Source: Trichoplax adhaerens
Lineage: Eukaryota; Animalia; Placozoa
NCBI RefSeq assembly: GCF_000150275.1
Contig: NW_002060944.1
Coordinates: 7,950,735-8,014,734 of the forward strand
Direction of reading: 5' to 3'
Length of the DNA: 64,000 nt
Part shown: positions 6,651 to 64,000 of the stretch, in pieces
Layout: the number at the start of each line of letters is the position of its first letter
Numbering within the stretch: the stretch's first letter is position 1
The notes under the pieces: generated by a model
Told to the model about the DNA's origin: nothing
The model's input: only the letters and a program-made list of their open reading frames with translations
The model's database searches: none
Position numbers and translations under genes: made by a program

Positions 6651-8448
6651 TCAACATGGTGGTAACTGAAATGTCCTAACATCATCATTAGTGGAGCGTA
6701 TGCAACCGCCCGAAACCCAACAATCGAACAAATTGCCGGTAAATGTTAAGTCAAATCGAACCTTCTCCCATGTATCTTCATCAGCGTTGTAGCGCTCACA
6801 GCAATTACCACGCTCATTATATCCGTACAAATAGATATACCCCTTGAAGATAATTAATCGATTTGTCTGATAATATTCGTTTGTATTAGCAACTGATGTC
6901 CACTCGTCATTTCTTGGATCATACCTCTCAGCGGTTTTTAGCTTAATACCAGATTGATCTTTACCTCTAAAATTACCCAAGGCAATCATTTCGCAATGGC
7001 ATCTTGATGTTATCATGGGTGCTGCAGATAACCACTGATTGGATTTGCAATACCAATATGCAACCTGATTTGTAGCTGCCTTGCCTCCGTTTTCGGTGCT
7101 AATTTCGCCACCGGCAATGTACAATCTGTCATCATATTGGCAAATACTTAACGCTGCAATTGGCTGTGGAAGATCAGGTATATTTGATTTGCTCCAACAT
7201 TTCTTATAGCAATCGAAACAAATTGTACTGGACAAGGCTTCCCGGGTAAAACCTAATGAAGATAAAGGGTAAGGTATATGATCAGAAAGATACCAGTGAC
7301 ATGGTAAGGCAAAGACTATGCCAATAGTTATGAATTTTTGCTAATGTAATCCCAACTTATAAATTGGATATCTTAGTTAAAATTGTTTTTTAAGCTAATG
7401 TGATCCCTATTAGTAAATTGGATTTCTTTGTCAAAATTACATTTTAAGCTAGTGAATTTGAAATCTTACTTGATCCATAACCTCCGACCGCATAGATCTT
7501 ATGGCCTATCGCGATAGCTGCATAACTACTACGACGGGAAGCTTGAATTGCACCTCCAGCATCATGATTATAATAACTATCTAACTTAACCGAGATGGCT
7601 CTTGTTCCTCCACCACCAATGGCAGCACAAATATTGCTATCCGCACATTGGCGTACTTTGGTTCGTGATGAGAAAAATCGCTCGGGTAAATAATGGAAAT
7701 TTTTCGCTTCCAGAAGCATTTGAAAACAGGGTAGGCTTTCTTTTAACAATGTTTCTTTCTCTTCGAAATCAATTAATTGCTCGACTGGGATCATTGCTAG
7801 GCGTACATGGCTAAGCAAACCAACCAGATGATCTTTCCTAATGGATGGATCCAGTTCGACCCATTTCTTCAATGTATTCAGCACTGTCAGTTCATTTTTA
7901 ACAGCTAATCGTTCTGAAGGTAAAATTTTATTAAGCAAAGGGTAAGGTATCTCATAAAAGGTATCATAGCCGGTGCATTTCTCAAAATAGTCCAAAATGT
8001 AATTATTTGCAATTTGGGTTAATGGATGAAAGTTATATAGCTCAGCAAAGATTAATATTTGCACGCAATTGGTGTAGCTTAAACTATCGGCCAGGAATGT
8101 ACAGCAGTAATCGACGATTTCGGATACGTTGAACATAGATGATGTGATGGCGATATTTTGTACGTTTTCACTGGTAATTTTTAGACTTCCACCGTAGAAA
8201 TAATCGATAATGCTAGTCATGGTTTTACCATCAACATGTCTTAGCTCAATCTTGCGTTGTTGTGATTCTGCCATGCCATTTGTAAACATAGCACGAAAGT
8301 AATCGCTAAAAGCAGCCAGGATGAATCGATGGCAATGCAATACGGTATCATTAGTGTGGATTGTAACATCAGAGAAGGTGCCTTCTGCGTATAATTCCAA
8401 AAAGGCTGAAGGAATTTTAGCTTGAATGATTACTTCACCGTCTTCCAT
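6651..8448 (-). CDS. Kelch-like BTB-BACK-Kelch protein (paralog 2), ~526 aa; exons 8448-7470 and 7252-6651
   Basis: BTB (FSDVTIH...HCHRFILAAFSDYFRAMFTNGMAES), BACK, kelch repeats (KIYAVGG, RLYIAGG, ERYDPRNDEW). Phase-1 GT-AG intron at the same position as in paralog 1. Confidence 0.92.
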
Positions 8449-58082: not shown

Positions 58083-60434
58083 GTAGAATATCACGACTTT
58101 AATTCACTTTCTATATACCCATACAATAGCCAGCCGATGAAAGCAAGAATTTTTGGAAAGATCCATTACTATGTATGAGCTAATTTCTCAGAAGCATTGA
58201 AGATGTGTTGATCAGCTTGATAAAATTTGGAATGATTCATTGGGAAAACAGAGTTAGAATCAATTTTAGAAAAATAAGTGAATGTTCTAATGTTTTCCAA
58301 GCTAAATAAACAGCATTTAACTGAAGCAGAAATCCTATAATGCTCTTTTCTCCATCCTAAAAAAGATTATTATCCTTGCTAATGCTGTCACCACTGAATA
58401 ATGTCTACTCCATTTAATAATAAGGATCGAACAGATCTAGTGCCATCAAAATTCCTATCCATAACCATCATTTCGTTTTGGATAGAAGTGAAAAGTCTAA
58501 TGGATAGATTACCCTTACATCTCCTAAATCTCTTCTAAAAATCTTGCTCAATAGCAATACTGCATAAGCATGCTATCGAGTGATAAACTTTTAAATTAAC
58601 TCTTGGGGAAGAAATATTATCCACGTTAAAGCTACCACATCTGAATAACTTCTACCGGTGCCATATCAATATCGAAGAATGATCAATCTACTAAATCCAA
58701 AGGTAGTCAAGTTTCAATGTATGGCCATTATTTGTTTTGCATAGAAAATGAAAATACACTAATAGATAGGCTACCTTTTCTGTCTCAGTATACCTTCTCG
58801 CTTAATAGTAATAATGTATATATACGTTATATACTATGGGTAATCAGCCTTTTAAATCGATTTATTAATAATGCTACCTTTGGATGGCAGCTATATTGTT
58901 AAAATCGAATTCGCTGAATGAATTTGAAAATCATGCAGTCATAGCGGATACAAAAAGTCGATTTGAGACTATTTTTATTTTAATTAGACCATCAATGTAG
59001 ACTTGCTGCGTTTATTATATACTGATCCATTAATTTTCCTTTACTTCCGATACTGATCAAAGCTACATACATGTAGCTCATGTGGATGCGAACTATGTCA
59101 TTCTTGTAGATACGCCTAATTAATAGTTTGTTAATACCACCGATAAACGAGAGAATGGCTATCAAATTGCCCTATTAACATTAGAATATGAGCTAGAAAT
59201 TGCTAGTTATAAATGAAGAATGTATTATGGTTATTAAAAATAACTAAAACAAAAATTTAATAGGAATTTTAGCTGCTTATGATCCTCGCATTTTCTATAT
59301 TACGTATATGTAAGTAATCTAAGGCAGTATCAATTTGCAATAGCCTAATATAGTCAAATTGCGACGATAAAAATGTTTGATGATTGTAATCTTAACATTA
59401 GACGCAATGGCATCGGCTCAAAAATGATGAAATTTAAGTCACCCGACAAATGCTGTTATTGAATATAACGATCATGATGGTAATGTAGGAATTGTACACA
59501 TCACCATCAATTTAATTCAGCTATAATTAACTCTACTTCCTATCGAGCTATCATCTTAAATAATGGTAGAGATGCATTTTAATCAGCTATTCAAGCTGTC
59601 ATAAATGAATGAATGATTTGATCAATACCATTTTAGCTACAACCCTGAGATCATTTGACAAATGATGTAACCGACGTTGAAAGTTTTTATATACAGTAGA
59701 CAGTCAAGTTTACCTCCAAAGATCGATTCTAGTATCATTAATGGGATCTATCTTAAAATAGACATAACGTTCTTTCAATGAATTTATTGCCTTAGTTATA
59801 ACGATAAAGGTTGTTACCCAAGTTTTATTGTTATCAAGTAGGAGTATAATATAATAATAATAAAGTTGATATTATCTTCTAGATGACTAAATTTTTTCTA
59901 GAATCCATTTTAACATGGACAGCATACATAAATGGTAGAAAGAATATTACAAGATAGGAAGATCTCTTAGCTCCAAATGTTGAATCAAGATTTCTATTTG
60001 GAAAATACGATGTAACAAATCATAATGAACGCTTAAAATAATCAAAAGTCGCATGTTTATCTTGTTAATGATTGATAGAATTTATATTTAATGATTTTTA
60101 GTGGAATAACGTAAGTAACGTCAGTTAATCTTGGTAGATTTGACTGAAAATTAGCATAAGTAGATTTACACTGATGAAATCCTTTAATAATTCTACAATT
60201 TGCTGAAANNNNNNNNNNNNNNNNNNNNNNNNNNNNNNNNNNNNNNNNNNNNNNNNNNNNNNNNNNNNNNNNNNNNNNNNNNNNNNNNNNNNNNNNNNAT
60301 TATCAATCTAATAGTAAGGAGATAGTTGACTGTACTAATTATTATCTTTATTTCTACGACGATAATACTAGATATTGAGTTGAAGAGTGTCAATATGAAA
60401 GATATAATTAAAATTGATATGTTTCTATCCTTAT

Positions 60435-60713
60435 TTAACTTGGAGTAGTCGGATCAACTAGCTGTGAGTTAAGATCAATTTTTAAATCAGGTAATTCTTC
60501 AAGCCTGTATAAGCCAAATTCGAAAATTAAATCGATTATAGTTTGATCATCGATGCTATCGGCTAGTAATTGAAAGTCTTCAAACCAACAACCATCTCGT
60601 TCGTAAAATGATTGATGAAGATGGTGATGGAGCAATAGATGATTATTATTCCTGTTCATTGAGTTCTTTCCATGACAGCTTTCATCTTCATTGGTTACAG
60701 TAAATTGAACCAT
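60435..60713 (-). CDS. CITED-like small protein (92 aa) with a CR2/CBP-p300-interacting domain
   Basis: aa 52-82 DSIDDQTIIDLIFEFGLYRLEELPDLKIDLN aligns ungapped with human CITED2 [31 protein letters not shown] (13/31 identical, recalled from memory). It has an LPDL motif, an upstream His-rich tract and an ATG start (GAAAATGG). Confidence 0.75.
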   Translation of the reverse strand: MVQFTVTNEDESCHGKNSMNRNNNHLLLHHHLHQSFYERDGCWFEDFQLLADSIDDQTIIDLIFEFGLYRLEELPDLKIDLNSQLVDPTTPS

Positions 60714-63700
60714 TTTCTCTCAAAGTTTGAAATATTGATATAATATTGAGGATAAAAAGTTTTCAATTTTTTGTGGTACACTTATTTGCTTTGTCAAGTA
60801 GGAAGCTTGAAAAGGTTTTATAACAACTTATTAATCAACTTTTAACCTATTTTTCGATCTTTTCCTTTCTCTTCTTGGCTTCACTAGCTTGCGATTTTGA
60901 TATGTCAATATCGATGATGCTCAATAGGATCAATTCTTATCACCGAGTAGAAATAGAATGGATGGGAAATATTACCAAATATAATCTTGTAATAGTATCC
61001 TTAATTTTTTTATGCCTATATATAAGGAAATTATCGAGAAATCAACTTATTAATAATATAATCTAGTAATCGATGGTAACACTGAGTAAATTTAAATTAT
61101 TATTTCAAGTAGAAGAAGTCAGCTGGACTGGAATATTAATATTTAGTCATTGTAGTTTAAGTCAAATCTAGTTCATTCCATTACTTATTGAGCTGGAGTG
61201 CAAGTGAAAATAATTTACACGGTCACGAGTTATTTATATTGTTTCCATGTGATAGAAATAAAGCAAGATTAAATAGAATAGACAAGCAAGATAGGATGTC
61301 TATATTAATCAATATTATTTCAATAATTTGAACCAATGAGAATGAGTAATAACCTAAAGTCATTTTATTTAATGTCTTTATTGGGGAGTATTATTTTATT
61401 ACGCTTCTATGTGAAAAGAATAGCTTTAGGTGTCGATTTCGATCCTAGTCGATACGCAAATGGAAATAAATTGAGCACGAGGTTGGTAATAAAATTAGGA
61501 ATCAATAAAGATTTCAATTAAATAGTCAGACAAGAATAAAATTTGATTTTGTTGTCTTGTCAAGCATTTTATAATCAAAAAAATACATAAGGATATCGGA
61601 AAGGAAGGAATGGAAAGGAAAATAGTACCGTAGTTAAAAGAGTAAAAAATCATCTTTTAGCTCTTTCTTCCTCCTTTCTTGGTATAAATTTTGTCAAAAT
61701 ATATTGCTATATTTAGCTCTTAATCCTTGGTAACAATTATACCTACGTTAGGCATGCATTGATTAACATTATCTTACCCATGGCCGTAGCCTATTTTACT
61801 TCTTTTTTCTTAATTACTTGATCATCGTCTATAACAGCATGGCGCTCTAACTATGTAATTTATTCTATTAAATCCTATTATTGACTAGCTTTATTCAAAT
61901 AGATTACAGTTGAAATTCTTCATCATCAACAATAGAATAGTATGACTGCTCTACACCCCCTGCTTGGAATAAAAGGATAATATCAATCATAGAAGGTAAC
62001 CATTTATTAATTGTTTGACTAAAATGATGATTTATCAAAGGGAATTATAAATATAGCGGCGTCGAATTGAATGCACTAAACTCAAAATGAAGGTGTAAAT
62101 AAAATTTCCCAAATTTAGATATGGATCATATCCTACATATCCCTAAAAAATTGACGTATACTCGTAGTGCAGAGAGCGAGAGAGAAAATCTATTGACATC
62201 CATACTGCGATCATAATGATAGCAGATTATATTTTGAAATCATCGAAAATGTCAAAATAAATGATTACAATATTACATCCGTATAATGAGCATCTTTTTA
62301 TCTCGTTATTCTATTCAGTTATAATTTCCAATCTTAGTAATAGTTATAGAAAATCAAGTATTAAAATAAGGTAATCATAGAAACTATATTATCTGCAAGT
62401 AAATTTAATGCATTTATCTTCGCTTAAGGGAGTTGAGCTTCAAAATTTAGAAATATTTTCAATTTTGATCAGAATGGATAGAGATGAAGAAGAAAAAAGT
62501 AGAAAATAATATTCTATAGCGCAATTGATAAGGAAATTGCTGATTATGTTGGAAAGATATTGAACTATAATGATGACATTGAAATGCTTAATGGAATGGA
62601 ATAAATACTTGGCACCATCTTTTATTATTAACTTGCATTTTATATTTGATAGCACGTTTTGGACTAATCTATCGAGTAAATAATATATTATTCTCGTCAA
62701 CAGCAGTCTATATTATATATTGTATAACGATATAGTTCATTCGATAGAAATAGATGGGATGGACATAACTTTAGTATCCATAACGATATTTTTTATAATA
62801 TATGCCTTAATAAACTGTTTAATTAGTAGATGAAATAACGTTGATAAAATGAGATGCAATCTTTGATGCAGATCTTACATGGAAAATAAAATTATACTGC
62901 TGCCTACTTAAGGTCCAATTATATATGCAAAGACATATAAGCTATAATTATCTTAATTGCAATATTATAACGACGAGGTCATGATTTATTAAGATATGAA
63001 TTTTTTATACCATCATAATGAATAGATATGAATGTCAAGGATGAATAGACATCTCAATTCATTTTCACTAGTTATTTGTAGAATTTAAAGAACAACATTA
63101 TAAGAAATAAAATATAACCAAGTTATGCCGCAAAATGATGACGTAAATCAACTTAGGAAAATAGAAAAGAAGGCGACATAGGAGGTTAATTAAAGCATCT
63201 CGTCAGCTAATAAAATCAACTTGGTCAATTAGGTTAATAATGCCTCAACTCGATGATAATGTTGAAGGAAGAAAGCCCAATGACTAGGAATATTTAAGAT
63301 ATCAAAATGTGATGATTAAAAAAACTACGCATAGATTAATCTTTGACTGTGACTGTATATATATTTAAAGTATGTACTTGTGGTAATTGAAGCTATCATT
63401 TCTCTGTTGCTATGGCTAAGCAAATAGTTTTGATCAATATAGCTATTATTATTTAAAATAGAGGACTATATCTTTCTATGTTTATATATTTCTGAAGTAT
63501 TGCATTACTAAAATCGTCATTATAATCAAGAAACGATTATAATTATCGTTACCTTAGCCTATTCTTACGACTATTGTCATGACGATAGCTAAGAGGGTAA
63601 TTTATGCCCCCAGACGAAAAAGATAATTTCAACGGCATTTAAAACAAGAGAAGCTATGATGACAATTGGATATAGCTAGGATGAATTAGAATCATGAACA

Positions 63701-64000
63701 ATAGTAAATAAAATACAAATAAATACTGTTAAACATGTCAATATCAAAAGTTAAATTAAGCTTTCCGAGACGTTGAGATTGCATGTTAACCTTATTGCTG
63801 TACTTTATATTTTATCGAGTCTAATAGAAATCAGTTGGTCGTTAATTTAATACCCATTCCTCTCTCATCTATATCTTACAATTTTATTCAGTCTTTTCAT
63901 CATCAATGATGGAGAAATAAATTAGTTAATAATGAAAAGAATAATTCATTCCCATAAACGTTCAAGCTAGTTTCCCATCTTTTAGTAACGCTATGATTTC

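Follow-up and report, generated by a model that had tools for sequence, protein, structure and literature searches.

The gene and its product

The window analysed here is a stretch of 64,000 nucleotides from contig NW_002060944.1 of Trichoplax adhaerens. On its minus strand, at 60435-60713, the list of open reading frames contains a complete coding sequence of 92 codons plus a TAA stop, beginning with an ATG in the context A(-3)/G(+4), as read from the sequence and from a DNA alignment of start regions. An in-frame TGA at 60720-60722, three codons 5' of the ATG, makes an upstream extension of the reading frame impossible. Six histidine and six asparagine residues occur among the N-terminal 42 residues of the product, and 12 acidic residues (D/E) against two basic ones (K/R) among the C-terminal 50, which have a pI of 4.05. 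The intact 92-residue frame with an Asn/His-rich N-terminus and an acidic C-terminus that the first-pass annotation had described is therefore present, judging by both the list and the composition.

The encoded protein is predicted to be small, acidic and largely disordered. AlphaFold2, given a three-sequence alignment, places helices at residues 43-53, 56-65 and 71-85 and assigns a pLDDT below 50 to residues 6-38; the N-terminal half is modeled as disordered. Three segments stand out. The N-terminal octapeptide M-V-Q-F-T-V-T-N (60690-60713, minus strand) is invariant in the alignment of three orthologues (A1). The acidic-hydrophobic segment W-F-E-D-F-Q-(L/M)-L-A (residues 43-51; 60561-60587, minus strand), with eight of nine columns invariant in A1, lies inside the predicted helix 43-53. 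It adjoins, on the N-terminal side, a core of residues 51-82 (60468-60563, minus strand) that resembles conserved region 2 (CR2) of the CITED proteins by Pfam, PDB and AlphaFold2 comparison. This core comprises an amphipathic helix (approximately residues 56-65), an LPDL motif (residues 74-77; 60483-60494, minus strand) and a conserved Asn. Searches against all of Pfam at E values up to 10 found no DNA-binding domain, nor any domain other than CITED, in the 92-residue protein.

Elsewhere in the window, fragments of BTB-BACK(-Kelch) genes lie at 881-1750 and 6651-8448, both on the minus strand; they probably belong to tandem KLHL-like genes.

Transcript structure

Read contigs of several sequencing runs were placed on 58600-62600. 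Run X6 contributes a single contig of 1486 nt at a depth of 90, which lies on 59804-61015 only, with essentially nothing else across 58600-62600. This is a transcriptome-like pattern, whereas run X1 covers the whole of 58600-62600 evenly, in a DNA-like manner. The same exon is contained in X11 and X13, two documented RNA-Seq runs from a closer relative (organism B).

At 61015 the X6 contig departs from the window sequence and continues for 152 letters, the first 30 of which have one exact match in the genome, at G000:C1413:8026201, the equivalent of window position 75467. The contig thus reveals a non-coding exon 1 of at least 152 nt outside the window (G000:C1413:8026201-8026352, corresponding to L009:1501-1652 on the minus strand), with the donor GATATC/GTAAGT. 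The acceptor AG, placed by the departure of the contig and by the sequence, lies at 61016-61017 on the minus strand, after a pyrimidine-rich tract (tttccttatatatAG/G). Donor and acceptor delimit a canonical minus-strand GT-AG intron, from which it follows that the X6 contig derives from RNA and that the transcript belongs to this strand. This 5'UTR intron is about 14.4-14.45 kb long; its 3' part occupies 61016-64000 (minus strand), and it extends past the window to window-equivalent position 75466. Exons 1 and 2 were treated as separate sequences. The reading frame had been described as intronless, which is wrong for the gene and correct for the coding sequence, which is uninterrupted.

Within the coding exon, the X6 contig end and the sequence define a 5'UTR portion of 302 nt (60714-61015, minus strand) that contains no ATG. 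The 3'UTR (59790-60434, minus strand), delimited by contigs and sequence, includes an assembly gap at 60209-60298. AATAAA hexamers are found at 59824-59829 and 59783-59788, and the RNA contigs stop at about 59790-59824. The spliced mRNA is about 1.5 kb long. Expression and splicing are established by the X6 contig, which crosses the GTAAGT...AG intron; X11 and X13 add to the evidence of expression.

Several further features of the transcription unit deserve mention in their own right. The assembly gap in the 3'UTR is written as 90 N and is really 198 nt long; DNA and RNA contigs of three runs cross it. An 85-bp block of the 3'UTR (60002-60085) shares 81% identity with L004:3040-3124, from a related placozoan, and may have a conserved post-transcriptional role. 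A longer, non-coding block at 61172-61581 lies in the 5'UTR intron, on the upstream side of the acceptor at a distance of 160-570 bp. Over 417 bp it shares 79% identity with L004:145-559, with identical runs of 20-45 bases and with indels that are not multiples of three. It is better conserved than the coding sequence (79% against 72.6%), although synonymous sites in the latter are near saturation. Contigs of X11 and X13, which are random-primed RNA runs, lie on 61090-62133, and the X6 transcriptome has none there. Possible identities of the block are an enhancer, an alternative promoter and a non-polyadenylated RNA. Run X11 of organism B carries a 23-nt deletion in it, at 61261; X13 bears the organism B label too but lacks the deletion. 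In the same long intron, a C/D-box snoRNA model, snoZ102_R77, matches 62825-62908 on the minus strand over its full length (28.2 bits against a gathering threshold of 40, E 0.27); introns are a usual location of snoRNAs. Beyond this sub-threshold match, Rfam found nothing in 59500-64000.

Orthologues, selection and annotation status

A full HMMER search of 1.84 billion representative proteins yielded one relative, P0001 (84 aa, E 2.7e-21), whose cluster contains a second form, P0002 (84 aa). They represent two other presumed placozoan lineages and are 57-64% identical to the T. adhaerens protein; their DNA comes from four assemblies (L002-L005), two of them ENA metagenomes and two from Logan, among which L004 is syntenic with the window. 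Nei-Gojobori dN/dS values for the three orthologue pairs are 0.095, 0.157 and 0.108; in the comparisons with the window, synonymous sites approach saturation (pS 0.63-0.73). All three lineages retain the start, the stop and the frame, and the sole indel is 24 nt long. Invariant columns are more frequent in the C-terminal part (33 of 50) than in the N-terminal part (13 of 42), which is variable beyond its first eight residues in A1; dN/dS in the C-terminal half is not higher than in the rest and is lower in two of the three pairs. The 5'UTR is essentially unalignable across species, and the splice acceptor is not traceable in L004. At closer range, all five differences between the coding sequences of organism B and the window are synonymous, each at a third codon position.

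The open reading frame is a real gene, spliced, expressed and under purifying selection, since transcription with splicing, conservation of the protein, and close-range variation that is exclusively synonymous are three independent grounds for this conclusion. It is single-copy: an A1 search of the animal's own genome found no paralogues. The exact 92-residue sequence is absent from a collection of 15 billion proteins that does include NCBI's Trichoplax models, and the gene appears to be unannotated in that collection. The remark of the first-pass annotation that such a frame is easily missed by annotation fits this case, and the frame is conserved, with dN/dS of 0.10-0.16, in two other presumed placozoan lineages.

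Connections to the chordate CITED proteins were sought at larger scale. Word-indexed searches for homologues, whether started from the single protein or from a three-sequence profile, returned the placozoan orthologue cluster only. A scan of JGI metagenomes with A1 gave 139 pattern matches, none of which was confirmed. Altogether, no sequences bridging placozoans and chordate CITEDs were found among 1.84 billion representatives, 5.8 billion clusters and the JGI metagenomes. As vertebrate CITED matches of about 20 bits are invisible at a database size of 1.84 billion, the HMMER result is no argument against homology.

Resemblance to CITED CR2

When the protein was compared with the whole Pfam library at E values up to 10, CITED (PF04487) was the sole match, at 18.1 bits and E 0.003. 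The match covers residues 51-80 and profile positions 160-189, i.e. 30 of 210, and lies below the gathering cut-off of 27 bits. Each of the three orthologues matches CITED and no other family, all of them below the cut-off. When the CITED profile was run against all six frames of the complete 105.6-Mb genome (1414 contigs), this same match came out best, with E 0.35. The score alone is therefore not significant. The best match does, on the other hand, fall in frame on the conserved C-terminal segment of an independently verified gene.

Structural databases point in the same direction. At E <0.5, the only PDB matches are four CITED2 activation-domain chains (1p4q, 1r8u and 7lvs among them), with E 0.005-0.02; a three-orthologue profile improves the best E to 0.0025, with CITED2 alignments that are gap-free over 29-32 residues. 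HMMER aligns residues 51-82 with CITED2 residues 13-44 of 1p4q_A without a gap, with 13 of 32 residues identical and about 22 of 32 similar, and all hydrophobic positions are retained as hydrophobic. This alignment reproduces the gap-free pattern D-x-I-D...L-x-x-E-x-G-L-x-R-x-x-E-L-P-x-L-x-x-x-x-N that had been noticed by eye, with the acidic D-x-I-D, the amphipathic helix, G-L-x-R, LP(E/D)L and an Asn four residues on in the same order as in CITED2. The second AlphaFold2 helix (56-65) occupies the place of the CITED2 alpha-A helix on TAZ1, and LP(D/E)L follows it after a spacer of seven residues, the spacing between alpha-A and LPEL in CITED2. The tetrapeptide is LPDL in T. adhaerens and LPEL in P0001 and P0002. 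Like CR2 in the CITED proteins, the module sits at an acidic C-terminus.

The resemblance is a partial one. The match comprises about 32 of the 48-55 residues of a full CR2, and no part of the protein aligns in Pfam with the CITED profile outside positions 160-189, where CR1 and CR3 would be found. In CITED2, LPEL is followed by an aromatic E-F-D-F motif. T. adhaerens has S-Q-L-V-D at this point, with aliphatic residues only, and the orthologues end in S-F-P-F further downstream. CITED2 is also much longer (approximately 270 residues against 92) and has a Ser-Gly-rich junction, which, like CR1 and CR3, is missing here. Of the four vertebrate CITED paralogues, three have CR1 and three have CR3. 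The shorter ones, CITED4 and CITED1 (PF04487), are about twice as long as the placozoan protein and retain CR1 or CR3, neither of which was detected in it; it amounts to a version with CR2 alone. What the placozoan protein shares with CITED2 beyond the core is a chain that is predicted to be largely disordered and has no DNA-binding domain, an acidic C-terminal module and, according to a weak prediction described below, the seat on TAZ1.

The ESM Atlas, searched with the whole protein and with residues 41-92, did not indicate CITED; it ranked bacterial ankyrin-repeat clusters first, with a score of 0.85 that falls short of the lead threshold of 0.9 and with few shared features. Pfam gives no ankyrin match at E values as high as 10, and the Atlas matches were regarded as uninformative.

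CITED-like was the identity originally proposed for this protein. CITED is indeed the one family that it resembles, in Pfam as in the PDB; membership is not established, with 18.1 bits against the required 27. Family membership is plausible from the sequence comparisons and fails the curated threshold.

The TAZ1 domain and a predicted complex

The animal's own genome contains one CBP/p300 locus, on contig C1396, with TAZ2 encoded in one exon and TAZ1 across two. The TAZ1 exon is 100% identical to TRIADDRAFT_31777, partial [Trichoplax adhaerens] (P0003), which confirms the earlier supposition that the host is a placozoan. Residues 1-90 of P0003 align gap-free with human p300/CBP TAZ1 (E ~1e-37), and the best matches include chains solved with CITED2 and with HIF-1alpha. 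As annotated, P0003 is a partial CBP/p300 fragment of 124 residues (G000:C1396:407181-407878; L006/L008), and the CBP/p300 gene appears to be split into fragments in the annotation. The last ~30 residues of P0003 coincide with an open frame that runs past the second TAZ1 exon, and are probably an intron read-through.

For complex prediction, the TAZ1 chain was taken from this public gene model, which spans both TAZ1 exons. Residues 1-94 of P0003 were combined with three Zn ions and residues 41-92 of the small protein. The ipSAE was 0.47 in three runs and 0.00 in three controls, in which the partner (two controls) or TAZ1 (one control) was replaced. The partner had a pLDDT of at least 64, and the runs shared at least 81% of their contacts. 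In the calibration of the tool, 51 of 78 solved complexes and two of 108 mismatched pairs attained the mark; at scores up to 0.60, wrong predictions outnumber right ones except for pairings that were likely a priori. The score may also reflect the model's memory of solved CITED2-TAZ1 complexes. The predicted complex passes its controls, if weakly, and gives weak support for binding of residues 41-92 to TAZ1. It is consistent with the CITED-like reading and is not independent proof of it.

Discussion

Our data suggest a model in which T. adhaerens possesses a minimal, CR2-only, CITED-like ligand of the TAZ1 domain of CBP/p300, a reading that we regard as moderately probable. Like the CITED2 activation domain, the CR2-like module would fold upon binding TAZ1 (CH1), a zinc-finger domain of the one CBP/p300 that the animal has. 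In this way the protein would serve as a co-regulator that does not itself bind DNA, either by recruiting CBP/p300 to transcription factors with which it pairs or by competing at the TAZ1 surface with the activation domains of other proteins.

The CR2 likeness could instead have come about by chance, from a low-complexity segment of acidic and hydrophobic residues in a small acidic protein that is specific to placozoans and has an unrelated function. The genome-wide E of 0.35, the fact that the frame was picked after the pattern had been seen, the ESM Atlas result, and a complex score in the range that is more often wrong than right for pairings not likely beforehand, all speak for this possibility. 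However, a random top match would have had to fall, in frame, on the conserved C-terminal part of one of about eleven thousand genes, which we estimate, rather than compute, to make up well below 1% of six-frame space; a chance resemblance is unlikely for this reason. Moreover, all three orthologues match CITED and nothing else, the other two are nearer to the CITED consensus, with LPEL, and the three complex controls all scored 0.00. Overall we consider a fortuitous likeness rather unlikely.

Short acidic-hydrophobic TAZ1-binding motifs can emerge convergently, and an LPxL-plus-helix element that works like that of CITED might have arisen independently in placozoans, with no descent from CITED. 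The match extends over about 30 residues only and stays below the Pfam cut-off, no intermediate sequences were found in any of the large collections, and published work places CITED2 in chordates only. In addition, the C-terminal activation domain (CTAD) of HIF-1alpha (PF08778), likewise a disordered TAZ1 ligand, carries an LPQL that occupies the site on TAZ1 to which the LPEL of CITED2 binds, showing that this type of motif is not unique to CITED. Yet the elements of the HIF-1alpha CTAD come in a different order, and it has no sequence match to the placozoan protein, the Pfam scan at E up to 10 having returned CITED alone; among PDB chains at E <0.5, too, there were CITED2 chains and neither HIF nor any other TAZ1 ligand. 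The similarity also goes beyond a four-residue motif, since helix, spacer, LPxL and Asn follow each other in the same order and at the same spacing over 32 gap-free residues, with the hydrophobic positions kept. Independent origin strikes us as rather improbable.

The first-pass annotation had gone further and proposed a CITED/p300 competition module acting on HIF, with negative feedback on hypoxia signalling already present in placozoans. Both a CR2-like module and a conserved TAZ1 are available for such a switch, and the HIF/PHD/VHL axis of T. adhaerens works (PMC6488082). The species has, however, neither FIH nor the HIF-alpha CTAD, the element that CITED2 displaces (PMC6488082; 10.1101/2025.06.06.658374). 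A search of the genome with Pfam HIF-1a_CTAD also gave no match, but its controls were silent as well, so that this search, lacking a positive control, provides no evidence. The HIF-binding consensus RCGTG is absent from 1.2 kb around exon 1, where 1.5 occurrences are expected; this weak test lends no support to control by HIF. The proposed module is thus unsupported. Because placozoan HIF-alpha is devoid of the CTAD, displacement of HIF from TAZ1 is an unlikely role for the protein, and the switch as a whole very improbable. That the transcript is non-coding and its reading frame fortuitous, as the short frame in a mostly untranslated mRNA of about 1.5 kb and its absence from all annotated proteins might suggest, is effectively refuted by dN/dS of 0.10-0.16 at nearly saturated synonymous sites, by the start, stop and frame kept in three lineages with a sole 24-nt indel, by five out of five synonymous close-range differences, and by the ATG-free 302 nt ahead of the start.

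Returning to the minimal CR2-only ligand, its evolutionary placement bears on published conclusions. CITED2 has been dated to Chordata (PMC1868935), and invertebrates, with placozoans mentioned by name, have been stated to lack it (10.1101/2025.06.06.658374). Its absence from invertebrates has served as an argument for the co-evolution of HIF-alpha, CITED2 and TAZ1 into a hypoxic switch of vertebrates. In the searchable literature we found nothing further on CITED in placozoans, cnidarians or other invertebrates. A conserved, expressed gene with a CR2-like module, in an animal that has TAZ1 but not the HIF CTAD, contradicts the explicit recent statement about placozoans, although the homology signal is weak. 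The surprise would be smaller if InterPro or NCBI annotations already extend CITED into non-chordate invertebrates.

More tentatively, and without going quite so far as to call it probable, we propose that the interaction between CR2 and TAZ1 predates the split of placozoans from cnidarians and bilaterians, and hence the HIF-alpha CTAD and FIH. In its original form CITED would have been a minimal protein with a general task at the TAZ1 surface of CBP/p300, as gatekeeper or as adaptor, and only later would chordates have turned it into an off-switch for hypoxia. If the interaction is that old, the published absence of CITED from placozoans would be an annotation gap. The locus also illustrates how a single-exon coding sequence of fewer than 100 codons can slip past the gene models of a reference genome. 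The finding suggests that the handle by which such proteins grip CBP/p300 is far older than the chordates. If the model is true, the TAZ1-binding module is ancient, and its role in displacing HIF is secondary.
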